From Macrostomum lignano (taxonomy: Eukaryota), in the NCBI GenBank assembly GCA_002269645.1, contig NIVC01001461.1, forward strand, positions 62,001 through 126,000: a stretch of 64,000 nucleotides of DNA. Direction: 5' to 3'. The first letter of the stretch is position 1, and every line of letters begins with the position of its first letter. Shown piece after piece: positions 1-18,431 of the stretch. The notes under the pieces are model-generated. The model worked only from the letters and a program-made list of their open reading frames with translations. It was not told the DNA's origin and searched no databases. The position numbers were made by a program, and so were the translations under genes.

Positions 1-53
1 TCATTAATACACCGGATCTGCATTTACATAAACTGGCCAATTCCAGTCTACAG

Positions 54-1545
54 ACGGCCTGCTGGACTACGAGAGCGCGCTGTTCCTGGACCTCTTTCAC
101 CAGGACGGCTTAGCGGTCCTCGGCGCCGGCCTCTGCCCGCACCGGCTGGCCGCCCAGCTCATCCGCCTCTACTCCGACCCGGCCCACCTGGTGCTGGTGG
201 TCAACGCGAGGCCCGACGAGGCCGCGTTTTACGCCGAGTACGTCGAGCGCGCCTGCGTCGCTTCCGGCGCCCCGCCTGTCTCGCCGGCGCCTCGCGCCCT
301 CACCTCTGAGCAGCCGCAGGCTGAGAGGCGCCGGCTCTACAACGAAGGCGGCGTGTTTTTTGCCTCGTCCGCCCAGATTCTCGTGGTCGACTTTTTGCGC
401 TCGGTGGTGCCGGCCGATGCTGTGAGCGGCATCATCGTGATGCACGCTGATGAGGTGCTGGACCTGTGCCAGGTGAGCCTTGACTAAGTTCCTCCTTGAC
501 CCGGGCCTTGACCCAGTTGGCCCAGGTCCTTAACCCATCTGATCAGGTCCTTGACCCATCTGATCAGGTCCTTGACCCATCTGCTCAGATCCTTGACCCA
601 TCTGATCAGGTCCTTGACCCATCTGATCAGGTCCTTGACCCATCTGATCAGGTCCTTGACCCATCTGATCAGGTTATTGATCCATCTGATCAGATCCTTG
701 ACCCATCTGATCAGATCCTTGACCCATCTGATCAGGTTATTGACCCATCTGATCAGATCCTTGACCCATCTGATCAGGTTATTGACCCATCTGATCAGGT
801 CCTTGACCCATCTGATCAAGTTATTGATCCATCTGATCAGGTTATTGACCCATCTGATCAGGTCCTTGACCCATCTGATCAGGTTATTGATCCATCTGAT
901 CAGGTCCTTGACCCATCTGATCAGGTCCTTAACCCATCTACTGATCAGGTCCTTAACCCATCTGATCAGGTCCTTGACCCATCTGATCAGATCCTTGACC
1001 CATCTGATCAGGTCCTTGACCCATCTGATCAGGTCCTTGACCCATCTGATCAGGTTATTGACCCATCTGATCAGGTCCTTGACCCATCTGGTCAGGTCAT
1101 TAACCCATCTAATCAGGTCATTGACCCATCTGATCAGATCATTGACCCAGATTCTTGACTCATCTGACCCACTGTTCCTTGACCCAGCCATCTGACCAGG
1201 TCCTCCTTGACCCGGCTGACCCAGACACATTGTGTGGTGCGTTTTCTATCTCCAGAGGATTCTCAATTTTCAATCCAAATTTCCCCAGGAGGCCTTCGTT
1301 CTCCGTCTGTACCGGGAGGCGAACCCCACCGGCTTCATCAAGGCCATCACTGACCGGGCCCAGGGCCTCACCCGGGGCGGCTTCGGCATCGAGAGAATCC
1401 TGCGCACCCTGTTCGTGCCAGGCCTGTTCCTGCTGCCCCGGTTCCATGAGAGCGTGGCCGCCTGCATGGACGCCTGCCCGCCACAGGTGACAGACAGACA
1501 GACAGACAGACGGACAGTAGACAGACAGACAGACAGACGGACAGC

Positions 1546-1610
<65 letters not shown>

Positions 1611-1673
1611 CTAAGACAGACAGACAGACAGACAGACAGACACTAAGACAGACAGACAGACAGACAGACACTA

Positions 1674-1710
<37 letters not shown>

Positions 1711-1713
1711 CTA

Positions 1714-1781
<68 letters not shown>

Positions 1782-4700
1782 TGGACAGACAGAACTTAAG
1801 AGGTCCAGCTAGAAGAAGGGGAAAATTAAATAAAATTAAATAAATTAACACGCACAAAAACACATAAAAGACGCCTGAGAAAGACACTCAGACAAACTGT
1901 CGTCTCGATCTTCACAGGTGGAGGAGGTTCGCGTCAACCTGACGGAGCCGATGCTGCGCTGCCAGTCGGCCCTGGTGGACCTGCTGAAGGCCTGCATGCA
2001 GGAGCTCGCTCGCTCCGCCCCCGTGCTGGACGCCAACGAGCTGACGGTGGAGAACGCGCTGACTCGCGGCTTCGACCAGCTGTTGCGGTCGTACACGGAC
2101 CCGGTGTGGCACCGCATGAGCTACCGGAGCCGGCAGCTGGTGGCCGACATCAGAACTCTGCGGAGATTCCTGCTGGCGCTGACTCAGGTTTGTAGAGTGC
2201 TTGAATTAGTCAGAGTGAGTGAATTGGTACAGCACCTGAAATATTCATGTAGTGCCTGAAGCATTAATGGAGCTACTGAAGAGCTACCTTCAGGCACTCA
2301 ATGAATCCTTCAGGCACTCAATAAATCCTTCAGGCACTCAATAAATCCTTCAGGCACTCAATGAATCCTTCAGGCACTCAATAGATCCTTCAGGCACTCA
2401 ATGAATCCTTCAGGCACTCAATAGATCCTTCAGGCACTCAATAGATCCTTCAGGCACTCAATAGATCCTTCAGGCACTCAATAGATCCTTCAGGCACTCA
2501 ATAGATCCTTCAGGCACTCAATAAATCCTTCAGGCACTCAATGAATCCTTCAGGCACTCAATAGATCCTTCAGGCACTCAATAGATCCTTCAGGCACTCA
2601 ATAGATCCTTCAGGCACTCAATAAATCCTTCAGGCACTCAATAAATCCTTCAGGCACTCAATGAATCCTTCAGGCACTCAATGCATCCTTCAGGCACTCA
2701 ATGAATCCTTCAGGCACTCAATGAATCCTTCAGGCACTCAATAAATCCTTCAGGCACTCAATGAATCCTTCAGGCACTCAATAAATCCTTCAGGCACTCA
2801 ATGAATCCTTCAGGCACTCAATGCATCCTTCAGGCACTCAATGAATCCTTCAGGCACTCAATAAATCCTTCAGGCACTCAATGAATCCTTCAGGCACTCA
2901 ATGAATCCTTCAGGCACTCAATAAATCCTTCAGGCACTCGATGAATCCTTCAGGCACTCGAGTCACGAGTAGCTGAAGCGCTCATAGAAAGCCTTTCATA
3001 TTCATGAAGTGCATTATGAACTCCAGGAGGACCCGGCCGCCTTTCACCGCCGAGTGGCCTCGGTGATCAGCAGCGAGAAGGCCTTCGGCGCCAACTCCGG
3101 CTGGCTGTTCCTGGCCGAGGCCGACCGGCTGCTGGCCGCCAGCAAGGCCCGCCTGGGCTCCGGCCCGGCCTCCTACGAGGTGCCGCCGAAGTGGCTGTCG
3201 TGCCGGGCCATCCTGCAGGAGGTGGAGCGTGAGCGGCTGGACCAGCAGCGGCCGGTTGCTGGCGCTGATGAGTTGGTTCTTGTGTTTATTGAATTTTTGT
3301 GTTTATTGAATTTGTGTTTGTGTTTATAGAATTTTTGTTTGTGTTTATTGACTCTTCTTTGTGTTTAGTGAATTTTTATTTACGTTTATTGAGTTTTTAG
3401 AGTTTTATTTATTTGGCGATTGTGTTTATTGACTATCTGTTTGCGTTTATTTAAGTTGTGCGTTAATTGACCTAGTTGTATGGGTTTATTTAGCTAGTTT
3501 GTGTGTATCAAATTCTGTGTTTATCGCATTTATGTTTGCGTTAATTGAATACTTATTTGTGTTTATTGGATTTCTGGACTTTTTCTACAGAAAAAACAGT
3601 AAATCCGTTTATAGTAGACGCAGGAGGTTTGTGCCACTTGGGTAGTCCTTGACTTTCGCGCAGCTTTCTCAATCTCAATTTCACCCCGCTCGCCCTGCAG
3701 CCCCACCGCCCAGCAGCAGCAGCTCCGCACCCTCATCATCGTGCACGACTCGTCTACTCAGCGCCAGCTGCTCGCCTTCCTCACCTCGGGCGCCGAGGCG
3801 GCCTTCGCCGCGGATGCCAACTCCGCCGCCGACTCCGCCGACGAAGATGCCGTCGAAACAACGACAACGGCGACGACTTCGACGGCGTCGAAAAAGTCGT
3901 CAAGAAAAACGGCGGCAAAGAAGAAGAGCAAAGAGCCGAACCTGCTCACCCTGACTCAGATGATTCGGCCGGCGAGCGACGTCAATGATCAGCCACAACA
4001 GCAAGGCGACGACGTCGAGTCAGTCGACAAAGTCGACCAGCCCACGTCGGAAATTGTGGACGAGTCCGAATTGAAGCGGCGATTCCCGTCGGCGCGGCTG
4101 TTCGGCCAGTCCGACTGTCGTCACGCGATGTTCGCCGTGCGGCGCCAGGCTGGTGGCAGCGGCGGGGTCGGCGCCGCCCGCCGCCAGGACTCCACGGTGG
4201 GGCACCAGCAGGCGCTGCCGATGCTGCTGGACTGCTGGCGGCCGCACCGGGTGCTGCTGTACGACCCGGACTCCACCAGCGTCAGGCAGCTGGAGGTGCA
4301 CAGCCTGTGCCGCAGCCGGGCCGGGGCCGCTGCCCCCCTAGTGGTGTACTTCTTCGTGTACGAGGGCAGCGTAGAGGAGCAGCGCTACCTCACCCAGCTG
4401 CGCAAGGAGAAGGAGGCCTTCGAGTTTCTCATTCGTGAGCGCAGCGTTGCCGTGGTGACGAGCGAGCCGGTTGTCAAGGGCGACCTGGCGCCGGTGGAGG
4501 AACTGGCGGGACCCGACGATGGGATTGCCGCGGCCGCCGCCGAGCAGCATCAGGTTGGATGGTTGGAGGGTTGGATGCCGGGTGATGTTTAGGAATGCAT
4601 AATAATTATTCATACATGCGCAACCCCCTGATTTCCACTGGCCGTGCGACTTACTTTTTGACCAAAAATGCGACTCTTACCTGTGAATGAAACCTTAGAG

Positions 4701-7700
4701 CAAAAAGTAACGCAATTTTGGTGAACGGCAAGAGTAACTTATTTTGAAGAAAACTGCCTCGTCATCTAATTAGTTTTCCGCCTTTTTGGTGGGCATTTTG
4801 CGACTTACCTTGTCTGGGGCCCTTGCCAGCCGGCCGGGTCAACCGGGTGTTGCGCATGTACAATATGATATTTATTGAAATTATTATATGATATACTGGG
4901 TTTAGGTTTAGGTTTGGGTTTGATTTTAGGTTTGGGTTTAGGTTTAGGTCTGAAGTTTAGGTTTGGGTTTGGGTTTGGGTTTGTGATAAGGTTTGAATTT
5001 AGACTTGGTTTGGGTTTACGCTTAGTTTTGTGTTTAGGTTTAGGTTTGAGTTTAGGTTTAGGTTTAGGTTTGAGTTTAGGTTTAGGTTTGGGTTTAGGTT
5101 TGGGTTTAGGTTTAGTTTTGTGTTTAGGTTTAGGTTTGAGTTTAGGTTTGGGTTTAGGTTTAGGTCTGGGTTTAGGTTTGGGTTTGGGTTTGTGATAAGG
5201 TTTGAATTTAGACTTGATTTGGGTTTACGTTTAGTTTTGAGTTTAGGTTTAAGTTTGAGTTTAGGTTTGGGTTTAGGTTGTTTAGGTCGGCATTCAAATG
5301 TCATGGACCCCTAATAATTAAGTATTGTGGCGTACAGTTAAGCCTTAAGGGTATCTTTCAATCGATAAAATGGATTATTTACCAGCTCAAGCCGCCTCCA
5401 CTTCCCGCCCAGGTGATCGTGGACGTCCGCGAATTCCGCAGCGAGCTGCCCTGCCTGCTGCACAGGCGCGGCATCACCATCCTGCCGGTGACCATCGACG
5501 TCGGCGACTACGTGCTGAAGAATGTCGTAGTCGGCCTTCAGGAGTAAAGATTGATGGACAGCCGTAACGTCAGGGGTCGAGGGAGGTCCGTTGCTAGGCA
5601 GTCTGGATTGGGCTGGCGTGGATAGAAAGTCGAAAGGAGCTTGTTCGACCTGGAGGGCAAGCAGGTCCCCGCGCGCGGTAGTTTCGAGCTCAGATTCCCA
5701 GGCGGGGTGGTGAGCGTTCCAGTCTCCGCAGATAATCGACGGGGAGTCAGTGAACAGCCTGGTCAGATCCGGAGAGTAACCGGTGTCACAGCTGCTGACC
5801 GGTGGCAGATATGAGTTGAACAGGCGGAGGGGCAGGGTTGAGTTAAAAAAGATGTCAATGCCCTGAAGTTCGCTGTGATGGTCGGTAAGACTTGACGTGT
5901 CGATTGGTGAAAAGCGAATGGAGTCTCGGACGAAAAGGACGAGACCTCCGCCTCTGGAGTTTGGGCGGTCAGCACGTATGCAGGCGTAACCAGGAAGAGT
6001 GGGGGTTCTCGCGTTCTTAGATAGTTTAGATTCTTGAATAGCGATGACATGCGGGTTGATGTTGCTGCACAGGTGTTCCAGTTCCTTAATCTTGCCGGAG
6101 ATGCCGTTGGCATTCCATTGTATGATGATGAGATGGTCTTGGGATTCCGACACTGAGGACTCGACTTTGCGGGGAGGGTGACTGTGTGAGCTACCCGGAA
6201 AGGTGATGTCCTTGGATTGATCGAATTTGACGTTGGAGTGGCAGTTGGATGAGCTAGCCTTTCCGGCTTTTTGTGATTGAGTCTCCAGAGCCTTGGCCGT
6301 GCTGCAACCACTTCCGCAGCACGGGCCGATGAAGTTGGCGTTCCAGTTTGAGATCGAGATTTCCGCGCAGTTAGTTCTCTGACACGACAGTGCAACCAGC
6401 CGTAGCAGGCGGTGCATTGGACGGAGCTGCAGTTTTTTGCGATGACCAACCCGCAGACAGGACAAAGCAGGTCTGCGGACCTGGGTTGCGCTCGACGTCA
6501 CCGGCGAGAAGGATAAGGCGAGCCAGCCACGCCGGCCAGACTGACCCGCCACAGAAAAAGGTGACCAGGAAGAGAACGAGACGTCCACGTCTGCTGGACA
6601 CGGGTCTCCCGACGAGGAGGNNNNNNNNNNNNNNNNNNNNNNNNNNNNNNNNNNNNNNNNNNNNCTCTTAGAGAATGGCAACCAGCCTGCCCTCCTCTAG
6701 AATCTGGTCCACTCTTAAAAAGCTGACCGGTCGTCCTAACGCGGATAAGAATGTCATTTTAAAGTTTAACGGAAAACAGGCCCTTTTCTGGTGCCGAAAC
6801 TGCGGACCGTCTCAACTGTCAGTTCACGAGGCCGCGCCTTCACTGCTCCAACCCGCAGATGCGCGTCGTTCGTCGACGTCTTAAGGGCCTTGCTCGTGCC
6901 GCTGAAGACGCCCCTGTCTTCTCGACTGACGACATCGAAATGGCCATCAAGCGGTCCAAACCCTCCAAGGCCATCGGCCTGATGGAATCTGCCCGCTCGT
7001 CATTAGGCACTTTGGTCCGAAGGCGAAGGCTGTGCTCCGAAACCTCTTCAATCGCTCAATCGCTTACAATGAGATCCCGGCGGTCTGGAAGAAGTCCTTA
7101 ATCTGTCCCCTTCTGAAGGATGGTAAACCGCAGGACGATGGTGCGTCGTATCGCCCTATCTCCTTTCTCTCGCCGCTCGTCAAAATTCTGGAGAAGATCC
7201 TGCTTCCGCTACTGACTGACCACCTCCAGCTCCCGGCCTGGCAACATGGCTTTCGTCCGCATCACTCCACCGTGACCGCCTCTGCCAACTGGTTGAGCAG
7301 ATCTGCTCAGGTTTTTGTTTGCCAAAACCGCCGGCCAGGACCGGCGTTAGCGCGATCGACCTTCGGATGGCATTCGACTGCGTTGACCACTACGAATTAC
7401 TCTCTGATCTCGCCGAGTCTGATCTTCCTAACACTGTTAAGGCCTGGCTTGCCAACTACATTCTTGGTCGTCAAGCTCGGACCGTCATGCGAGACTTTAA
7501 GTCGAAGTGGCGGCAGGTTCGCATGGGAGTTCCACAGGGCAGCGCCATCAGCCCGCTTCTTTTTGCCTTTTACTTGGCTAAAGCTCCTGTGCCATCCAAT
7601 CCGGCCACTAAACTAATTGGTTACGCTGACGATCTTACCGTTGCCGCCTCATCCCCAAACTGTTATTCTATTGAACAACAACTGAACAGCTATCTCGCTG

Positions 7701-10118
7701 ACCTTGCTCCGTTCCTTGAGTCGCGCAAGCTCCAAATTTCTACATCAAAGTGCTCCTCCACTCTGTTCAGTCCGGATCAGCGCGAGTACTCTCGTCAACT
7801 GAACGTGTCCATCAACGGCTCATTACTACCGCAAGCCCTCTATCCGAAAATTCTTGGTGTGACTTTCGACCCTAAGCTCTCCTTCGCTAGACACGTTACC
7901 ACTCTTGCGGAAAAAACCCGGAAAAGGAACTGCCTGCTACGCTGTCTCGCCGGCTCCTCCTGGGGCTGCTGCAAGGAACTTTTGCTGACCACCTTCAAAG
8001 CGTTAGGCAGAAGCCTGCTCGACTATGCTGCTCCGGTCTGGGCCCTATCATCTCCAACTCGTCCTGGACGCGGCTGCAATCGGTCCAGAATGCAGCGATT
8101 CGCGCATCACCGGCTGCACTGCCCTTACCTCTGAAGCGGATCTTCATAGTGAAGTCCAGTTGCTTACCGTCCGCCAGCACAACCGACTTCTTTCGCTCCA
8201 GTTCAAGCTTCGCGCTAGACGCCCTGAACTCCCTTGTCACCACCTTTCTGGCCTTCCGCCGCCGCGCAGACTCATGAAAGCCTCCATCTTCACGGCTGAA
8301 CACTTTAATGCTGATTGGACGCCGGTTCCGGCCCGGACGTCCTTGACGCTGCTGCTGGGATCGCGCCAGGCGGGCCCAGCATACGCAGGCAGTACAGGCC
8401 ATGCTGGACAGCCTGCCACAGAACCGTGTTATTCAAACACAACGGCCAGCGATCCATCGCTCCGAAACTTGCCTCCCCCGCCGCATGCGGTGCATACTGG
8501 CGCAGCTCCGCTCCGGTTTCTGCCCGCTTCTCCAAGATTTTCAGTCGAGAATCAAACCAGGCGTCGCCGCGGTCTGTCCTGATTGCGGTCTGGAGCCCCA
8601 AACGGTGGTCCATCTTTTCGACTGCCCTGTCTATCCGACGCCGCTCTGCCCTAGTGACCTTTGGAACAACCCAATTGAGACGTCCACCTTCCTGGAGTCG
8701 ACCTTCCTCGGCGGGCTGGGACCCGAGCCGTAGGTTAATACACACACACACACACTACGTGCTGACGCCCGACATCTGCGTCGAACGGAAATCCGTGAGC
8801 GATCTGATTGGCTCGCTTAATAGCGGGCGACTGTACAACCAGGTGAGCGGGGCTGCACGGGCGCATTGGGAATGGCCTCACCCAGTCATCAAATGACCTC
8901 ATCTCACACCCAGTCATCAAATGACCTCATCTCACACCCAGTCATCAAATGACCTCATCTCACACCCAGTCATCAAATGACCTCATCTCACACCCAGTCA
9001 TCAAATGACCTCATCTCACACCCAGTCATCAAATGACCTCATCTCACACCCAGTCATCAAATGACCTCATCTCACACCCAGTCATCAAATGACCTCATCT
9101 CACACCCAGTCATCAAATGACCTCATCTCACACCCAGTCATCAAATGACCTCATCTCACACCCAGTCATCAAATGACCTCATCTCACACCCAGTCATCAA
9201 ATGACCTCATCTCACACCCAGTCATCAAATGACCTCATCTCACACCCAGTCATCAAATGACCTCATCTCACACCCAGTCATCAAATGACCTCATCTCACA
9301 CCCAGTCATCAAATGACCTCATCTCACACCCAGTCATCAAATGACCTCATCTCACACCCTGTCATCAATGACCTCACACCCTGTCATCAATGACTTCACA
9401 CCCAGTTATCAATGACCTCACACCCTGTCATCAATGACCTCACACCCTGTCATCAATGACCTCACCCCGCCAGGTGGTGAACATGACTCAGCACTACCGC
9501 ACTCCGGTGCTGCTCATCGAATTCGACGCCGAGCGCACCGGCTTCGCCCTTTACCACGGCCGGGCCGCCATGAGCTCGGAACTGAACTCCTCGGACACGA
9601 TCTCCCGCCTGAGCCTGCTCACCCTGCACTTCCCCCAGCTGCGCATCCTGTGGAGCCCCGCGCCCCACGCCAGCGCCGAGCTGTTCCACGACCTCAAGCG
9701 GGGCCGCCCGCAGCCGCAGCTGCAGCTGCTGCCCTCAGTCTCGGCCGCCACCGCCGGCGACTCCTACAACGACGTCGACGACAGCGAGGCTTCTTCGTCG
9801 ACTTCGTTGACGCCGGCGGCCTCGGCGGCGACGCTGCGTCACGTGGCGCGGAGCATGCTGCTGCGAATGCCCGGCGTCACCCACCGGAGTCTGCGCGGCC
9901 TCATCAAAGCGGCCGGCGGCAGCTTCGCCGGTCTGTGCCGGCTGGGCGTCGGCGAGCTGCGGGAGGCCCTCGGGCAGCGGGAGGCCGCCGACCGGCTGCA
10001 CGAATTTCTGCGCACCGACGGCCGGCGCCTGGCGGGCGGCGCCGCTGCTGGGCGGGGAGGCGCCAGGCGGCCGAAACTGGCGCTGGCCGCCAAACTGCCG
10101 ACCGCCAGGAGGAACTGA
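54..10118 (+). CDS. ERCC4: DNA repair endonuclease XPF (ERCC4/Rad1/MEI-9); this copy is interrupted by a LINE in the nuclease exon
   Basis: Phase-consistent GT-AG exons: 54-472, 1289-1486, 1918-2187, 3027-3271, 3701-4553, 5413-5518 + 8766-8842 (split by LINE), 9474-10118. XPF motifs: [121 protein letters not shown], and a C-terminal HhH2 (LLRMPGV). No ATG in the first exon; the start is upstream of the window. Confidence 0.95.
496..1158. repeat. 21-bp minisatellite (CAGGTCCTTGACCCATCTGAT)n, XPF intron 1
   Basis: About 30 tandem copies read directly. Confidence 0.95.
1489..1792. repeat. (GACA)n microsatellite, XPF intron 2
   Basis: Direct reading. Confidence 0.95.
2287..2958. repeat. 20-bp minisatellite (ATCCTTCAGGCACTCAATGA)n, XPF intron 3
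   Basis: More than 30 tandem copies. Confidence 0.95.
4615..4858. mobile_element. Putative MITE (TA target, Tc1/mariner-like)
   Basis: Terminal inverted repeats CATGCGCAAC(C/A)CCC at both ends, flanked by TA (4613-4614, 4859-4860); no ORF. Confidence 0.5.
4897..5282. repeat. (GGTTTA/GGTTTG)n telomere-like hexamer array
   Basis: Direct reading; TTTAGG/TTTGGG units with a duplicated internal block. Confidence 0.85.
6476..6517 (-). other. 2A-like StopGo peptide [13 protein letters not shown]|P
   Basis: Exact match to the D(V/I)ExNPGP consensus, preceded by a Leu-rich helix. Confidence 0.85.
6621..6664. other. Assembly gap (44 N)
   Basis: N run. Confidence 1.
8879..9465. repeat. 28-bp minisatellite (CCCAGTCATCAAATGACCTCATCTCACA)n, last XPF intron
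   Basis: About 17 near-perfect copies, then shorter variants merging into the acceptor. Confidence 0.95.
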
Positions 10119-10209
10119 CGGTTTCGCTTTCTAGGAAGCTTTGCTATGCTGTGAAGATGGCTCTGTCAATACAATCTGAAATCATTTCGCCTTTCTAAGA
10201 GGTCAGCTC

Positions 10210-10615
10210 CTGGTCATTCTAAAATGCCACCCCTGGCCATTCCGAGAAACCACCCCTGGCCATTCCAAGAAACCAACTCATGGCAATTCTAAGAAGTCAC
10301 CCCTGGCCATTCTAAGAAACCACCCTGGCCATTCCAAGAAACCACCCCTGGCTATTCCAAGAAACCAACTCTTGGCCATTCTAAGAAACCACCCCTAGCC
10401 ATTCTAAGATACCACCCTGGGAATTTTAAGAAACCAATGCAAAGAGGGCCATTCAAAGAAACTACCCCTGGCCACTCTAAGAAATCACCCCTGGGCCCTG
10501 GCCAATCTAAGAAATCACCCCTGGGCCCTGGCCAATCTAAGAAACCAACACTGGCCATTCTAAGAAACCACCCCTGGCCATTCTAAGAAACCAACACTGG
10601 CCATTTCTAAGAAAG
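10210..10615. repeat. Degenerate 22-25-bp minisatellite (CACCCCTGGCCATTCTAAGAAAC)
   Basis: Direct reading, downstream of the XPF stop. Confidence 0.85.
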
Positions 10616-10911
10616 CATGCTGAGCTGTCATTGCATCTTCGTTAAGTAATTTAATTCTAGAAGCGATCTCGTTCCATTTCTTAGAAAATTGTTTATTTTT
10701 ATTTTAATATTCCGCGTCGACTTTCGCTTCAAATGATGGATGGCATTAAACAATTCAAACTTGAGCTCAATGCAGCATTTTATCCAATCTGTAATTACTT
10801 ATTTTTAACTAATAAAATGACTAAATCAGCAATAATGTTGCTTACTACTTTGTCTTTAAAAAGCAAGTTTCGTACTTCTTTGATCGAATTAATTTTGTCA
10901 GTTAAATTCGG

Positions 10912-11145
10912 CTACTCGACCGAGTAGCTTCCAGTGAGCAGCGACTCAACCACTCGCTTGTCCTCAGCTTTAGACTCGTCAGTTAGAAGCAGATAATCCG
11001 GCTCCAGATCCAGTCCGAACCGGCACAGGTTGCTCAGGTCTTTGTCCAGCTGGTCTTCCATTGACTGCAGCGATGCCGCGTTCGGTTGAGTCGCTTGAGG
11101 TTCCTCTATTTCCGGCTTCCGTTTATTGGGCTCCTCTGTGCTCAT
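10912..11145 (-). CDS. Candidate small intronless ORF (77 aa, acidic), unknown function
   Basis: ATG start, non-repetitive GC-richer sequence, TATAAAAA about 110 bp upstream (11256-11263), AATAAA downstream on the minus strand; no recognised family. Confidence 0.4.
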   Translation of the reverse strand: MSTEEPNKRKPEIEEPQATQPNAASLQSMEDQLDKDLSNLCRFGLDLEPDYLLLTDESKAEDKRVVESLLTGSYSVE

Positions 11146-11255
11146 GTTGGCTCATTCCAGTTGCTAGCGGGTTACAGACTGTTGCTGGCGTCAGTGCTGC
11201 TAGCAAATTTGCTGCTAAATAACAGTACAGTGCTTCTTGCGCGTTGAGTGCACGG

Positions 11256-11267
11256 TTTTTATATTGG
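11256..11267 (-). promoter_or_regulatory. Putative TATA box with adjacent CCAAT
   Basis: Minus strand reads CCAATATAAAAA. Confidence 0.3.
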
Positions 11268-11404
11268 TTGCTGGGCCACTGGCAAGCCATTTACTGCAAG
11301 GTGAATAAATAAATTCCTTGTCTCATTTAGCAGTTTTTTACCCTAACTGGGGAACCATTCTCAAGTAAGCTTATATAATCACCTAAACTCAAAAATCACC
11401 TTAG

Positions 11405-11678
11405 GTATTCCCTGAAGCTCAATTGAGAATCACCCTGAGCATCCCTGAAGCTCAATTGAGAATTACCCTGAGCATCCCTGAAGCTCAATTGAGAATCACC
11501 CTGAGCATCCCTGAAGCTCAATTGAGAATTACCCTGAGCATCCCTGAAGCTCAATTGAGAATCACCCTGAGCATCCCTGAAGCTCAATTGAGAATCACCC
11601 TGAGCATCCCTGAAGCTCAATTGAGAATCACCCTGAGCATCCCTGAAGCTCAATTGAGAATCACCCTGAGCATCCCGA
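11405..11678. repeat. 33-bp minisatellite (CCCTGAGCATCCCTGAAGCTCAATTGAGAATCA)n
   Basis: About 8 copies. Confidence 0.95.
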
Positions 11679-12173
11679 AGATCCCATAATAGAATTCCCT
11701 TAAACTCCGTTGCGTCAACAAGTGCTTTTTCGCTTCTGAGAAGTCCATGCGTCACGCATTGAGTATGACTGCCATATTAGCCTCGCTAATTCGCACTATC
11801 GTAACCACGCGGAGCTGCGTGACCACACGCTGACCGAGTCAGAACGCTAGCTGCCAATTTTAAAACAATGAAGCCTCTGAGGGGTGGTCACCCCCCCCCC
11901 CCCGATAAAAAGACAGCAGAAACAGCAACCAAGGGTATAGACTAATTGGCTGCAGCTCAGCTCTGAGTGACCCGGTAATTCCCCATGACTGAGTCTCAGA
12001 AAAGTGGAAGAAATTTCCAGAAGCGTCTTCGCTTCATTGTTCAACTAAGCAGAGGGCAGACCAGCAGAACTAATTATACACTGCCTATATTAACTTGAGC
12101 CCCCCTACAGTCAGCAGTGAGTAGGGACTCGACAAGCACTGAGCAACAGCAATCCTAACAAACTAAAGCAATA

Positions 12174-14172
12174 ATGCTACTTAGAAATGCAGCGGCATCC
12201 TTGAGCAGCCGGCCGCTGTTCTGCAGGTGCCTCTCCTCCTACCTGTTCAGCGGCAACAGCTCGCCCTGGACCCGCCTGACCAGCCCGGAGATCCCCGTCA
12301 TCGCCGCCGCGCCGGAGTCCGCAGCCGGCAGCCCGGAGCGTCTGGTAGGAACGGCCGGCCTCCGCAAATTCGTGGAGAACATCACCCGCAAGCCCAAGGA
12401 GGCCCGGCTCTGGCTGAAGTACTTCAAGTACTTCTCGGCGAAATCGCCCGGCAGAGCCTTCGCCGTGATGCGCCTGTCGCCTGACGTCTTCGCCGATACG
12501 CGCGAGCTGCGCCGGCTGGCCTGGTCCACCGCCTTCCTGTTCGAGCACGGGCTGGTGTCCGCGCTCATCTGCCGCATGTCCGGCGACGAGGACTGGCAGC
12601 GAGCGGAGCTGCTCGGCCAGCTGCTGCTCAGGCACGGAGTTCCCTCGAAGGTGCTGCTGATGAGCGGCCTGTCGGAGGACTCGGTGTCCGGGCAGCAAGG
12701 TGCGGACCTGCTGTCCCTATCGCAGGTCTGCGTGCCCATCGTCTGCTGCCCGGTGCTCGCCTCCGACGCCGGCGACGAGGCTGCCTCAGCCGCGGTGGTC
12801 GACTCCGCTCTGATGCGCCTGTGCGAAGTCCTCCGCCCGCTGAAGGTGCTGCTGCTGAGCGGGCAGCCTGGCCTGCCGGACCCGAAAGGCCGCGTCATGA
12901 GTGATGTGGTGCTGCCCAGTGAGTGCTTGACCAGAACCTGCTGTGCACAATGAGTCACTTAGTTGTTTATTTAGTCAGTCAGTCAGTCAGTCAGTCAGTC
13001 AGTCAGTCAGTCAGTCAGTCAGTCAGTCAGTCAGTCAGTCAGTCAGTCAGTCAGTCAGTCAGTCAGTCAGTCAGTCAGTCAGTCAGTCAGTCAGTCAGTC
13101 AGTCAGTCAGTCAGTCAGTCAGTCAGTCAGTCAGTCAGTCAGTCAGTCAGTCAGTCAGTCAGTCAGTCAGTCAGTCAGTCAGTCAGTCAGTCAGTCAGTC
13201 AGTCAGTCAGTCAGTCAGTCAGTCAGTCAGTCAGTCAGTCAGTCAGTCAGTCAGTCAGTCAGTCAGTCAGTCAGTCAGTCAGTCAGTCAGTCAGTCAGTC
13301 AGTCAGTCAGTCAGTCAGTCAGTCAGTCAGTCAGTCAGTCAGTCAGTCAGTCAGTCAGTCAGTCAGTCAGTCAGTCAGTCAGTCAGTCAGTCAGTCAGTC
13401 AGTCAGTCAGTCAGTCAGTCAGTCAGTCAGTCAGTCAGTCAGTCAGTCAGTCAGTCAGTCAGTCAGTCAGTCAGTCAGTCAGTCAGTCAGTCAGTCAGTC
13501 AGTCAGTCAGTCAGTCAGTCAGTCAGTCAGTCAGTCAGTCAGTCAGTCAGTCAGTCAGTCAGTCAGTCAGTCAGTCAGTCAGTCAGTCAGTCAGTCAGTC
13601 AGTCAGTCAGTCAGTCAGTCAGTCAGTCAGTCAGTCAGTCAGTCAGTCAGTCAGTCAGTCAGTCAGTCAGTCAGTCAGTCAGTCAGTCAGTCAGTCAGTC
13701 AGTCAGTCAGTCAGTCAGTCAGTCAGTCAGTCAGTCAGTCAGTCAGTCAGTCAGTCAGTCAGTCAGTCAGTCAGTCAGTCAGTCAGTCAGTCAGTCAGTC
13801 AGTCAGTCAGTCAGTCAGTCAGTCAGTCAGTCAGTCAGTCAGTCAGTCAGTCAGTCAGTCAGTCAGTCAGTCAGTCAGTCAGTCAGTCAGTCAGTCAGTC
13901 AGTCAGTCAGTCAGTCAGTTAGTTAGTTAGTAGATAGCGAGAAAGAGCGAGCGAAGCGAGCTCTTTCGAGCTTACTTGCCGCAGCCAATCAAGCTGAATG
14001 CACGCACACAAGATCACCGGAAACGATTAAGGCAGCTGGAAAGCCAATGGGCGCGGTAAGCGCTTTTATCCAGAGGAACTACCTGCTGGAACCAGCCATG
14101 CCGATCGAAAATCAGACTACTTAAGTAGTGCAAAAGAGAGCGCGCAACTACCGAGAAATCTAATTTTAGGGT

Positions 14173-14262
<90 letters not shown>

Positions 14263-14291
14263 GAGTTAGTTAGTTAGTTAGTTAGTTAGTG

Positions 14292-14350
<59 letters not shown>

Positions 14351-16592
14351 CACTTAGTTAGTTAGTCAGTTACTTCGGGTGTGTCATAAGTAATGTCACT
14401 GCAGGCCTCTGTCTAAAATATGTAGGCACATGGACTTGTGGGTAGTGTAGCTGCAAAGTATACTTAGTGAAGCAATAGCAGTGCATTTGAGACGTGCAAA
14501 GGTTGTTTATGGCCCAAGCTATCGCAAGAATACGCCAAGCAGATTTAGCAAGTGCAACGCGATGAAAAATCGTCTATGCAGCGAACAAAAATCATCATGA
14601 ATCTCGACATGACGCCTGCACCAAGCAGATCCGCAAGGTGTTTAGCAGCCAGGGCTTGAATGACATCCTAAACTGCCTGGTCGCTGAGGATGAAAGCTGG
14701 CTCCACCTGGATGGCAAGGACAGCAAGGCAGATAATCGCTGCTGGTTGGGAGCTGGGGACTTCAGGCCGATGGTGACCAGGAAGTCCATCTCGGACAAGA
14801 AGACCATGCTGCTGGTAGCCTTCACGCCAAACAAACGAGTCTCCATCTGCACAACTCCACCGAACACCAAGGTCGATGGCCAGTACTTTATCGACTTTTT
14901 CCGGCACACTGGGGACCTCTGGTGCACTCTCCGGTCAAATCCATGTCACCTGGACGAGGTTCTGTGGCAGATGGACACCGCACGGCTGCACACCTGAAGG
15001 CTGTTTCGAATTTTCTGCCTGCACGGCAAGTGAATATGCTCTGACAGTCCCTACAGCCCAGACTTCAACTTTTGCAAGAGATTCCTGTTCAAATGGCTGA
15101 AGGCTGACTTTTCCAAGAAGAGTTTCGCAAACCATGAAGAGGTAAAACAGGCTGCGTTGCACTGGTTATGGCAGTTGGAGGAAAAACACCTGCAGGCTGA
15201 GGTGGACAAGCTGTATGAGCACTGCCAGAGGGTGATTGATATTGGGGGACTCTATGTTGTTGAGTGGTACAGTTTTGTTCATCTGCGATTGCAAGTTCGT
15301 CTGTTTTCACATCAGTGACATTACTTATGACACACCCGAAGTAGTTAGTCGGTCAGTTAGTTAGTTAGTCAGTTAGTCAGTTAGTCAGTCAGTATTTGAT
15401 TATTTGTTTGTTAATTCTTCCTGCTCTCTGCTTCATCCGCAGGTGACCTGGCCCCGCTCACCGGCCCGAGAAGTCACCTGAACGCTGAGCAACGTCGCCA
15501 GCTGCTGACCTCGGCCGAGCTGTTAGGCAACCTGTCCAGCGAGAGCCACGTGGTGCTCACCAGCGCGGGCTGCGTGGTGCAGGAGCTGTTCACCCACCAC
15601 GGCTCCGGCACGATGGTCCGCACCAGCGAGAAAATCATCCAGCAGTGCACGCTGAAAAGCGTCTCCCGGCCGGCCATGTCCGCACTGTTCAACCGGGCGT
15701 TCGGGAAGACGCTGCGCGAAGACTGGTACACCCGGGCGGAGGGCCTGGTCGAATCCGTGTACTTCAGCGAGAGCTACAGTGCCGCCGCGGTGGTTCTGCG
15801 ACTGCCAAACGTTCGGGTGCCCTACCTGGACAAGATTGCAGTGAGTTTGGGCTGAAAGAGGATCTTGAATAGCGCTTCAAGGAGTGTGATTTGGCGCAGC
15901 TGGCACCCTAAAGTGGCGCACCTGGCACCCTAAAGTGGCACACCTGGCACCCTAAAGTGGCACACCTGGCACCCTAAAGTGGCGCACCTGGCACCCTAAA
16001 GTGGCGCACCTGGCACCCTAAAGTGGCGCACCTGGCACCCTAAAGTGGCGCACCTGGCACCCTAAAGTGGCGCACCTGGCACCCTAAAGTGGCGCACCTG
16101 GCACCCTAAAGTGGCGCACCTGGCACCTTAAAGTGGCACACCTGGCACCCTAAAGTGGCACACCTGGCACCCTAAAGTGGCACACCTGGCACACCTGACA
16201 CACCTGGCACCCTTAAGTCTCCTAAGGTCTCCATGGCCCCCTGGTTGCCCTGTATCCCTCCTGTTCCCTTTGATCCACCGGTCTGCGAGGAAAGGCCAAC
16301 AGTTTTACGCAGTTACAAAAAATGAAATTTAATTTTATAACAGGTCAGCGAAGCGGCCCAGGGCTCCGGCATAGCTGTGATGCTGTGGAACCGGATTATG
16401 GAAGATTATCCCAGGCTGTTCTGGCGGGCCAAGTGCACCAACAAGGCGGCAGTGGCCTGGTACAACACCCTGGCCCAGGGCAGCTGGAAGGCCGATCGAG
16501 ACTGGACCATCTTCTGGTACGGCCTGAGCGACAGCGGTCTGCTGGGGGCCCTCATTGACTACGCGTCCGAGAAGCCAGCGGATTTTTACTGA
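12174..16592 (+). CDS. NAGS: N-acetylglutamate synthase, mitochondrial (vertebrate-type AAK + GNAT)
   Basis: Exons 12174-12918, 15443-15840, 16344-16592, phase-consistent. Arg/Ser/Leu-rich transit-like N-terminus; KPKEARLWLKYF..AFAVM, QELFTHHGSGTMV, VPYLDKIAV|VSEAAQGSGIAVMLW, LFWRA, WTIFWYG match NAGS motifs. Confidence 0.9.
12972..13918. repeat. (AGTC)n microsatellite, about 950 bp, apparently perfect
   Basis: Direct reading. Confidence 0.98.
14174..14372. repeat. (TTAG)n microsatellite
   Basis: Direct reading; resumes after the mariner at 15342. Confidence 0.95.
14373..15341 (+). mobile_element. Mariner-type DNA transposon, internally deleted, defective transposase
   Basis: Perfect 29-bp TIRs CTTCGGGTGTGTCATAAGTAATGTCACTG; TA TSD (14371-14372, 15342-15343); transposase remnants VAEDESW, QMDTARLH, SPYSPDFN; 969 bp. 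Confidence 0.92.
15895..16212. repeat. 22-bp minisatellite (TGGCACCCTAAAGTGGCGCACC)n, NAGS intron 2
   Basis: About 13 copies. Confidence 0.95.
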
Positions 16593-16960
16593 CTTCTGAC
16601 TGCTGACACCTGGCTGCTGACACCTGACAGCTGACACCTGACTACTGACTGCTGACACCTGACTGCTGACTGCTGACACCTGGGTTTGAAACTTGACAGC
16701 TGACTCCTGACAGCTGACTCCTGACAGCTGACTCCTGACAGCTGACTCCTGACAGCTGACTCCTGACAGCTGACTCCTGACAGCTGACAGCTGACTCCTG
16801 ACAGCTGACAGCTGACTGCTGACTGCTGACGGCTGACATTTGAAAACTGACACCTGACTGCTGACTGCTGACACCTGGGTCTAAAACCTGACAGCTGACT
16901 CCTGACAGCTGACAGCTGACTGCTAACTGACACCTCACTCCTCTCCTGAGTCTCCTGACT
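16590..16960. repeat. CTGAC-based 7-14-bp repeat starting at the NAGS stop codon
   Basis: Direct reading. Confidence 0.9.
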
Positions 16961-18431
16961 TCTCACCTAACTAATGACTGCCAATTATCAATCCAGTGTC
17001 AAAGTGTGGAAAAAATCTGGAAAAGCTAGCCTTCAGTTATAATTTGCTGGACTTTGCAGGACAAATTTGAATAATGTTATTTGATTTATTAGCTCAAGAT
17101 TAGTTAACAAGGACTACTAGACTAGACTAGACTAGACTAGACTAGATATATAACGAAGTGTTCCTAGTGGTCCTTGTATGTTAATCAGTTTGTGAATATT
17201 ACCATATTTAATTTTTTTCTGCACTCATCATTTGTGTGCATAAAAATTGCATTGTCGTGTAAATTTTAGCTGTTTTGCGGATAAAAAGTTGTTGAAATAC
17301 ATTGCATCATCGATCATTAGTATCAAAACAATTAATCATTACGTTTCTTCTCTTACAATATTACTGATATCATCCCCTGTGCGCACTTGTCTGTCTCACT
17401 TTACTTTTCCAGGGTTCGCAAGGAGAGGAAAACCAAGCGGGCTGGACCGAAGTGGGGTGGGGGCTCTCTGTACTTATAGCAATGTACAGGGGCGCTTATT
17501 GGGGGAAGGGATGGACGGTATTAGATAGCTGGCCAATCAGCGGCTGCGATCATCTTGATAAGCAGAAGTTCAGTTATTAATGAGGGAGGGAGAGGGGGAA
17601 ATGCCCAACCCCCCCCCCCGCCGCCCCCGAAACGGCACGCAGGGCTGCAGCAAAACGGAGTTGGGGGGTGGGGCGAGGGTCACGGGGGACGGAAAATAGA
17701 GGAGAGGCGCGGCCTGCGCGCCACAAGGGTCCGAGGCTGACCATAAGGGGTTTAATTAATCTGAATTAATCAAGAACGGCTGCAGCAGTAAGCAGAGCAG
17801 CGCAAGGACTGCTTGAACTTGTAATTTAGTCCGCAATTATCTACAGAGTCAGATGGTCTCAATTTGTTTATTTGGTCACAAGCCAGTCCCAAATCCTTCT
17901 TAGAAGCTACACGCAGCTCTTTCGGTTTAACCTTTTGAACTGCAGGCTCCGCCCTGTGAGAAGTTGCGTGAAGAACTTTATTGTGTAGATGGCCGTTCAC
18001 CCACCCCACCAACCCAGTTGGCAGTTGCTATTCGCCTTATTAGCGCTGAATTAATTCTCAGCTCTTACTACTAAACGAATTCCCGGCCTCCGACTGCGTG
18101 CCCATGCAGAGCTGCTCGTGGCTCGTAAAACGAACATCTGCTTTTTGTTACCTTGCTTCTCTCCAGCCCTCTGCTAAGCAATGACCCACCCACCCATCCC
18201 GCGGCAACAACCCCAAATTTTTTCATTCATGAGCAAGTGGCGCCATATGCCCGAGCCCCGCTCGTTGCAGGCTGGAAATGCGGGGACCTGCATTTATTTA
18301 GCCACACTATATAAATAAAAGCCGCGAGACAGTCTGCCCATTTTTGGCTGCAAAATAACTCTTTCAGGGTCTTTGCAACGATTTGTCCTCATCTTATTCA
18401 GCAGGTCTTGCAGTCGAGAGTCCAGATTGGA

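Follow-up and report, generated by a model that had tools for sequence, protein, structure and literature searches.

The subject of this analysis is a 64-kb stretch of contig NIVC01001461.1 (hereafter the window) in assembly Mlig_3_7 (GCA_002269645.1) of the Macrostomum lignano DV1 line, and within it a copy of the repair gene XPF whose sixth exon is interrupted by a retrotransposon. An earlier reading made from the letters alone (the sequence-only reading) had placed a retrotransposon in this gene, inside the catalytic GDY...ERK motif, and both statements were borne out: the insert encodes APE endonuclease and RVT_1 domains, ends in a tail and is bounded by a target-site duplication (TSD), and in an alignment to the human protein the break falls between chain residues 718 and 719. 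The XPF gene lies on the plus strand and has seven exons with GT-AG borders throughout, all of them open, as determined by tblastn of the M. lignano XPF model P0137 together with a splice-site search and translation. The features of the gene and of the insertion site are as follows.

44-4553, plus strand: upstream XPF exons (at or before 48 to 472, 1289-1486, 1918-2187, 3027-3271 and 3701-4553), defined by tblastn, splice sites and stop-free translation.
5413-8842, plus strand: XPF exon 6 with the insert, acceptor cccag/GTG and donor CAG/gtgagc.
5413-5518, plus strand: 5' part of XPF exon 6 (VIVDVREF...VGDYVL), GDY at 5503-5511, aligned to human XPF chain residues 684-718.
5507-5518, unstranded: left copy of the 12-bp TSD, ACTACGTGCTGA, present once only in each of the two further XPF loci described below (L001 and L002).
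5545-5547, plus strand: premature TAA, 9 codons into the insert, overlapping a donor-like G/GTAAAG at 5544.
8754-8765, unstranded: right copy of the 12-bp TSD, ACTACGTGCTGA, an exact repeat of the left copy.
8766-8842, plus strand: 3' part of XPF exon 6, ERK at 8783-8791.
9474-10118, plus strand: last XPF exon (exon 7), with the remainder of the nuclease domain, the HhH2 domain and the stop, found by splice-site search and overlapping the NCBI fragment P0132.

The reconstructed gene matches M. lignano XPF models in the protein database at 97% identity, and the 940-residue product is collinear with the models P0133 and P0137 (helicase-like N-terminal region and HhH2; the N-terminus was compared by eye only). 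After joining of the insert flanks, Pfam ERCC4 is recognised in the C-terminal part (E=3.4e-25, profile positions 1-139 of 140), which aligns to residues 684-906 of human XPF (6sxa chain F), with GDY and ERKSVSD opposite D715 and E725-D731 of that chain. NCBI annotation at this locus is limited to P0132, a 211-residue C-terminal fragment from the last exon that starts at an internal Met, and the five intact upstream exons are unannotated. The view that the gene is otherwise intact applies to every exon in the window, all open and with canonical splice sites, and stops short of the 5' end of the gene, the start codon being outside the window.

The 12-mer ACTACGTGCTGA is found exactly twice within the window, at 5507-5518 and 8754-8765, and the identity ends at 12 bp on both sides. 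The insert between these copies (5519-8753) is 3,235 bp or more, as a run of N inside it leaves the true length uncertain. Joining 5518 to 8766, that is removing 5519-8765, restores the XPF frame as had been predicted, giving an open 183-nt exon 6 that codes for 61 residues in phase 0/0 and equals the empty sites in L001 and L002. The exact repeat alone is weak evidence, because a second, chance 12-mer repeat is present in the same 3.5 kb; that the insertion is real is settled by the empty site at two paralogous loci of the same assembly. The run at 6621-6664 is the sole N run in the window, and the insertion claim stands because both insert junctions are more than 1 kb away from it. The break parts D687, E690 and D715 of the human chain from E725, R726, K727 and D731, residues with established roles in the GDXnERKX3D motif (with D676, D704 and D720 in the older 905-residue numbering).

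A count of XPF copies in the assembly, the check proposed with the sequence-only reading, yielded two further loci, L002 (NIVC01000543.1) and L001 (NIVC01000033.1), both with the empty site. The 12-mer occurs there once, at 15429-15440 in L002 and at 16015-16026 in L001, and the surrounding sequence equals the joined flanks. Both loci have a selenocysteine elongation factor gene upstream, and both align past XPF into an N-acetylglutamate-synthase-like gene region. L002, which encodes an intact XPF, is about 99.96% identical to the flanks in the window, introns and microsatellite arrays included; about 4 substitutions and 2 single-base indels separate the two over about 9.7 kb, and the real differences are an intronic SNP (single-nucleotide polymorphism) at 2815, single-base indels at 4719 and 11890, and exon-7 SNPs at 9757 and 9761 (GD vs VE), the variants specific to the window being G at 9757 and C at 9761. 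Since the site is empty at both loci and L002 is nearly identical, the insertion is derived and younger than an extremely recent split. By this comparison of sequences it is very young, and the near-identical empty locus supports the proposal that this is either a very recent null allele or a duplicated copy being lost.

The same proposal had supposed a genome with duplicated chromosomes. In agreement with this, M. lignano is a neopolyploid, and the DV1 line has three haplovariant subgenomes (S, L1 and L2) with an SNP divergence of 1.4-2.4% between them (PMC10733133). The divergence of about 0.04% between the window and L002 is far below that range, and the two may be alleles of one subgenome, or subgenome copies that were locally homogenised. 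L001 is more distant, and the divergence is mosaic: over window positions 1-18059 identity to L001 is 88-97% across XPF and 99.5% from 12973 on, a pattern pointing to recombination or gene conversion among the haplovariants, or else to a chimeric assembly.

The insert itself comprises two arms in opposite orientation, separated by the run of N, with the following features.

5519-6620, minus strand: antisense 5' arm, 1,102 bp, with a 2A-like peptide, a PHD-like finger and an APE endonuclease (Pfam; tblastn to P0010 residues 12-311).
5521-6132, minus strand: APE endonuclease without the C-terminal SDH motif (Pfam Exo_endo_phos, profile positions 1-180 of 225; also Exo_endo_phos_2).
6316-6464, minus strand: PHD-like Cys/His finger (motif search).
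6476-6511, minus strand: 2A-like peptide, upstream of the finger and the endonuclease (motif search).
6621-6664, unstranded: assembly gap of 44 N (size estimated) at the inversion junction (sequence; SSPACE scaffolding, PMC5730564).
6665-8733, plus strand: sense 3' arm (6665-8753 = 2,089 bp), with a linker, reverse transcriptase (RT), C-terminal Cys/His motif and stop (tblastn to P0010 residues 491-1118 and P0013 residues 390-1057).
Within the sense arm, plus strand: RT domain RVT_1 (Pfam, E=2.8e-29), YADD at 7622-7633.
8575-8625, plus strand: C-terminal Cys/His motif of the sense arm, with the TAG stop at 8731-8733 (motif search, translation).
8734-8753, plus strand: short 3' untranslated region GTTAAT and (AC)7 tail (8740-8753).

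On these features the insert is classed as an APE-type non-LTR retrotransposon, similar to long interspersed nuclear elements (LINEs): it has endonuclease and RVT_1 domains (here on opposite strands), a 3' tail and a 12-bp TSD, and neither long terminal repeats (LTRs) nor other long direct repeats were found within it. The nearest database proteins are 39-45% identical to it and are full-length proteins of 1,000-1,200 residues with the endonuclease followed by the RT in one open reading frame (ORF), some of them with a PHD domain, and more distant protein matches carry only generic source names such as 'jockey' or 'BS'. A 2A-like motif is present in 23 of 120 protein relatives, and that of the M. 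lignano element is, by sequence, a canonical 'ribosome-skipping' motif. The 2A-PHD-APE-RT layout has been reported for Crack-17_BF and CR1-1/17/26_BF of amphioxus and for STR-24/25/34/35_SP of sea urchin (Odon et al. 2013, PMC3708506). Like those 2A-bearing LINEs of the CR1/Crack/L2/Rex1 group, the M. lignano element combines an N-terminal 2A-like peptide, a PHD-type finger, an APE endonuclease and an RT; it differs in coming from a flatworm, a group not among the phyla listed there, and in that the proteins nearest to it are only 39-45% identical. An XPF-like gene model, P0006, which bears the UniRef name 'Reverse transcriptase domain-containing protein', was considered as a possible older model fused to the insert and was set aside, as Pfam finds no RT in it and its sequence runs out in intron 5.

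Comparison with full-length relatives shows how the arms are arranged. Against P0010 (1,121 residues), the antisense arm corresponds to residues 12-311/314 (residues 12-311 being read from 6559 down to 5527) and the sense arm to residues 491-1118 (6796-8697), and the letters right of the gap read in sense from about residue 447 on. With P0013 as reference, residue 244 (5521) is the last one covered by the antisense arm and residue 390 (6693) the first covered by the sense arm. The arms are therefore non-overlapping stretches of one ORF in the expected order, and about 130 residues (about 400 nt), including the endonuclease SDH motif, are absent between them, with the junction inside an N gap of estimated size. 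The left TSD directly adjoins the antisense arm, which has no tail; the only tail is on the sense arm, at the right TSD. The gap stands exactly at the switch in orientation, and the letters on either side of it are continuous in no frame. Because the gap flanks are discontinuous and the inversion point lies inside the gap, the size of the deletion and the length of the insert are uncertain, and neither junction is affected. The assembly was built with Canu and scaffolded with SSPACE (PMC5730564), and the gap is evidently where two contigs were joined, each of which runs from unique flanking sequence into the element.

One TSD pair around two fragments in opposite orientation, the antisense one from further 5', is the architecture of twin priming, and by their sequence the opposite arms, the missing middle and the single TSD pair carry its signature. 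Both arms would derive from a single RNA. The locus most likely records one very recent retrotransposition, by twin priming, of an APE-type non-LTR element into the sixth exon of one of three XPF loci in the DV1 line. In such an event, the element endonuclease would nick the bottom strand at GGCG/ACTAC, and the freed 3' end (...GT) would prime reverse transcription at the RNA's (AC)n tail, producing the sense 3' arm. A second nick, in the top strand 12 bp downstream (GCTGA/CG), would supply a second primer, which would anneal within the RNA, close to where the endonuclease-coding region ends, and be extended toward the RNA 5' end, producing the antisense 5' arm. Joining of the two cDNAs would leave opposite-orientation arms of one element, with a stretch of about 400 nt missing from between them or concealed by the gap, and a 12-bp duplication around the whole.

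Twin-primed copies of mammalian LINE-1 (L1) have the same TSD-bounded fragments in opposite orientation, with the antisense fragment from further 5', an internal stretch missing and the tail on the sense fragment only (PMC2837659). The M. lignano insert differs from these in that it is a flatworm element of the 2A-PHD-APE-RT type, its tail is (AC)n, not poly(A), and its inversion junction lies inside an N gap. The antisense arm also reaches almost to the start of the ORF, and the antisense fragments of L1 twin priming are usually shorter than this arm. Pairing between element and target as a guide to the site was considered and rejected. An 11-nt stretch of the element (5968-5978) is complementary to the target site (8756-8766), and 5.7% of first-order Markov shuffles reach at least 11 nt; an 8-nt inverted repeat spans the left junction (5505-5512 vs 5526-5533) and was treated in the same way. 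Both matches are probably due to chance.

The order of events is the point at which a different history could be written. A 5'-truncated sense copy might have inserted first, and a further copy, or else a fragment taken up at a break, might later have been placed in reverse at its 5' junction; in a variant, two RNAs of the same family would have taken part in dual priming, which has been discussed as yielding the same architecture (PMC2837659). The middle of the insert is unread, and the origin of both arms from one RNA is deduced without a family consensus, both of which leave room for such a history. We nevertheless consider it improbable: there is a single TSD pair, with no second tail or duplication at 5519 or beside the gap, the arms complement each other within one ORF, in the order that one template would give, and a double hit on the same base is unlikely in so young an allele.

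Translation through the insert places the stop where the sequence-only reading had it, at 5545-5547, ahead of ERKxxxD and HhH2. The predicted product ends after 9 foreign codons, before ERKxxxD, the remainder of the nuclease domain and the HhH2 domain that binds ERCC1. ERKxxxD and HhH2 are needed for catalysis and for ERCC1 binding, and the insert-bearing copy would be null. Its mRNA is a likely target of nonsense-mediated decay because the stop lies upstream of the last intron. As L002 encodes an intact XPF, no repair defect and little or no phenotype would be expected. Nuclease-dead or truncating alleles of human ERCC4/XPF (XP-F, Fanconi anaemia group Q and XFE progeria) likewise lose ERKxxxD of GDXnERKX3D and HhH2; unlike them, the M. 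lignano lesion is in one of three neopolyploid copies, and it is not expected to impair repair. Loss of duplicated genes by transposon insertion after whole-genome duplication (fractionation) offers another parallel: an essential duplicated gene has lost one copy, and a near-identical one is intact, in a genome of three subgenomes. The M. lignano case differs in that the disrupted and intact copies are about 0.04% apart, compared with 1.4-2.4%, and may be alleles rather than homeologs.

Splicing is the obvious route by which the allele might escape being null, either through cryptic sites that remove most of the element or through skipping of exon 6, with an in-frame protein as the result. The sequence-only reading had held that no GT/AG pair removes the insert cleanly, and for exact excision this is correct, as no GT-AG, GC-AG or AT-AC intron is obtained in any of the 13 equivalent registers; it does not extend to in-frame partial excisions or to skipping of exon 6, which are possible on paper. 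Skipping of the 183-nt exon, in phase 0/0, keeps the frame and removes the active site. The donor-like GTAAAG at 5544 pairs in frame and stop-free with AG sites near the end of the element, for example those at 8544 and 8733, though these splice sites rest on pattern only. Every such product either loses 61 residues, with DxxE, GDY and ERKxxxD, or gains at least 19 foreign residues between GDY and ERK, and none would restore a normal active site. There is accordingly little likelihood that the allele is other than null.

Several observations weigh against a single twin-primed insertion. The inversion junction coincides with a scaffolding gap (PMC5730564), and no single assembled molecule spans the insert. 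Chimeric scaffolds are numerous in Mlig_3_7, amounting to 36% of assembly length (PMC10733133). No close copy of the element was found, either in the protein search (nothing above 45% identity) or in the window and the loci L001-L003. The element also contains at least eight apparent frameshifts which, if real, would mean that the source RNA was already defective, and this would be unusual for a fresh LINE insertion.

Six of the frameshifts, all of 1 nt, are in the sense arm and two are in the N-terminal part of the antisense arm, the endonuclease being open. Seven of the eight could be placed, and each of these is consistent with the gain or loss of one base in a short homopolymer (a loss in about six); the eighth, at about 8290-8350, could not be placed. 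No in-frame stop interrupts the stitched element ORF, and a change of this kind (C4 for C5) is seen in the last XPF exon of L001. We think that most of the frameshifts are consensus errors rather than decay, because repeats are poorly polished by short reads. In both cases the element copy was dead on arrival, being inverted and short of part of the endonuclease.

The gap and the chimeric scaffolds raise the further question of whether the insert, or its head-to-head layout, is an assembly artefact made from mis-joined contigs that end in repeats, the real locus being empty or holding a simple 5'-truncated element. SSPACE scaffolding, with only about 64% of bases judged error-free (PMC5730564), and the existence of a near-identical empty locus, as would be expected of a mis-built duplicate contig, point the same way. 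However, the two junctions lie in different contigs and are each more than 1 kb away from the gap, and both contigs independently carry the same 12-bp duplication. Together they rebuild the empty site to the base, and a chimera would not make a TSD. At the TSD the sense arm has a proper tail, and the tail-less antisense arm stops within coding region, unlike a random mis-join, and the arms do not overlap. An artefact is, in our estimate, quite improbable. A palindromic long-read artefact was rejected, as there is no long inverted repeat between the arms, which cover different parts of the ORF. That the XPF copy is an old pseudogene, long non-functional and with the insertion as one of several lesions, is scarcely tenable, for though the element has at least eight frameshifts and NCBI annotates only a 211-aa fragment here, all seven exons are open, the flanks are about 99.96% identical to the intact locus, the TSD copies are identical, and the frameshifts are single-base changes at short homopolymers with no in-frame stop, the pattern of an unpolished long-read consensus that is found also in an L001 exon.

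That L001 exon bears on the number of working XPF copies. At about 17030-17040, the last XPF exon of L001 has C4 where the window has C5 (9628-9632), which shifts the frame of the NCBI protein P0001 before HhH2, and proteins of an older assembly from the same reads have an uninterrupted frame across this site. C4 is either a homopolymer consensus error or the mark of a second disabled copy. If it were the latter, two of the three DV1 copies would already have been disabled independently, one by the LINE insertion and the other by a 1-bp deletion in the last exon of NIVC01000033.1, and a core repair gene would be heading to single copy in a very young polyploid, partly through an active twin-priming LINE family of the 2A-PHD-APE-RT type. 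We regard this scenario as unlikely; were it true, twin priming would be documented in an element far removed from L1.

LINE insertion into an exon, twin priming and loss of a duplicated copy are known kinds of event, and the XPF case is a fresh instance of them. The sequence-only reading is extended by the identification of the organism and locus, by the empty sites found elsewhere in the assembly, by the recognition of the insert as a LINE and by its 5' inversion with a gap at the inversion point. The insertion would represent a clean, datable knockout of one duplicated copy of an essential repair gene in a neopolyploid and, should long reads bear out the inversion, a case of twin priming in an invertebrate element other than L1. 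It would also mean very recent activity of a LINE family in a laboratory line of a regeneration model, and new insertions may differ between sublines. For the design of knockouts in M. lignano, one of the three XPF targets would already be null, and users of the Mlig_3_7 annotation should be aware that the only model at this locus is a 211-aa XPF fragment.

Some further features of the XPF gene and its surroundings were recorded. There is no in-frame ATG ahead of the first XPF exon, which is preceded by an acceptor, ttccag/TCTACAGAC, at about window position 47; a spliced leader may supply the AUG. An elongation-factor gene on the same strand ends about 400 bp upstream of XPF and shares the transcript-cluster name Mlig023716 with it (L003 150-570). 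The arrangement fits an operon using spliced-leader trans-splicing, which is common in M. lignano (PMC8629364). Five of the six XPF introns contain long tandem arrays (523-1149, 1489-1793, 2287-2959, 4899-5279 and 8879-9376), with units of a 21-mer (x30), GACA (x76), a 20-mer (x34), GGTTTA (x64) and a 28-mer (x18), and the spans of L001 aligned to these repeat-rich introns differ in length from those of the window (compared by span, not array by array).

Downstream of XPF there is a further gene.

15415-15852: N-acetylglutamate synthase NAT domain gene (Pfam PF04768).

This gene holds a 959-bp (AGTC)n array at 12973-13931. A mariner-like transposase suspected at 14566-15315 was not confirmed by Pfam, and an Rfam scan of the whole window detected no Rfam families. 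Window positions 26000-51000 consist mostly of long tandem arrays, which make spurious ORFs of 180-445 residues.

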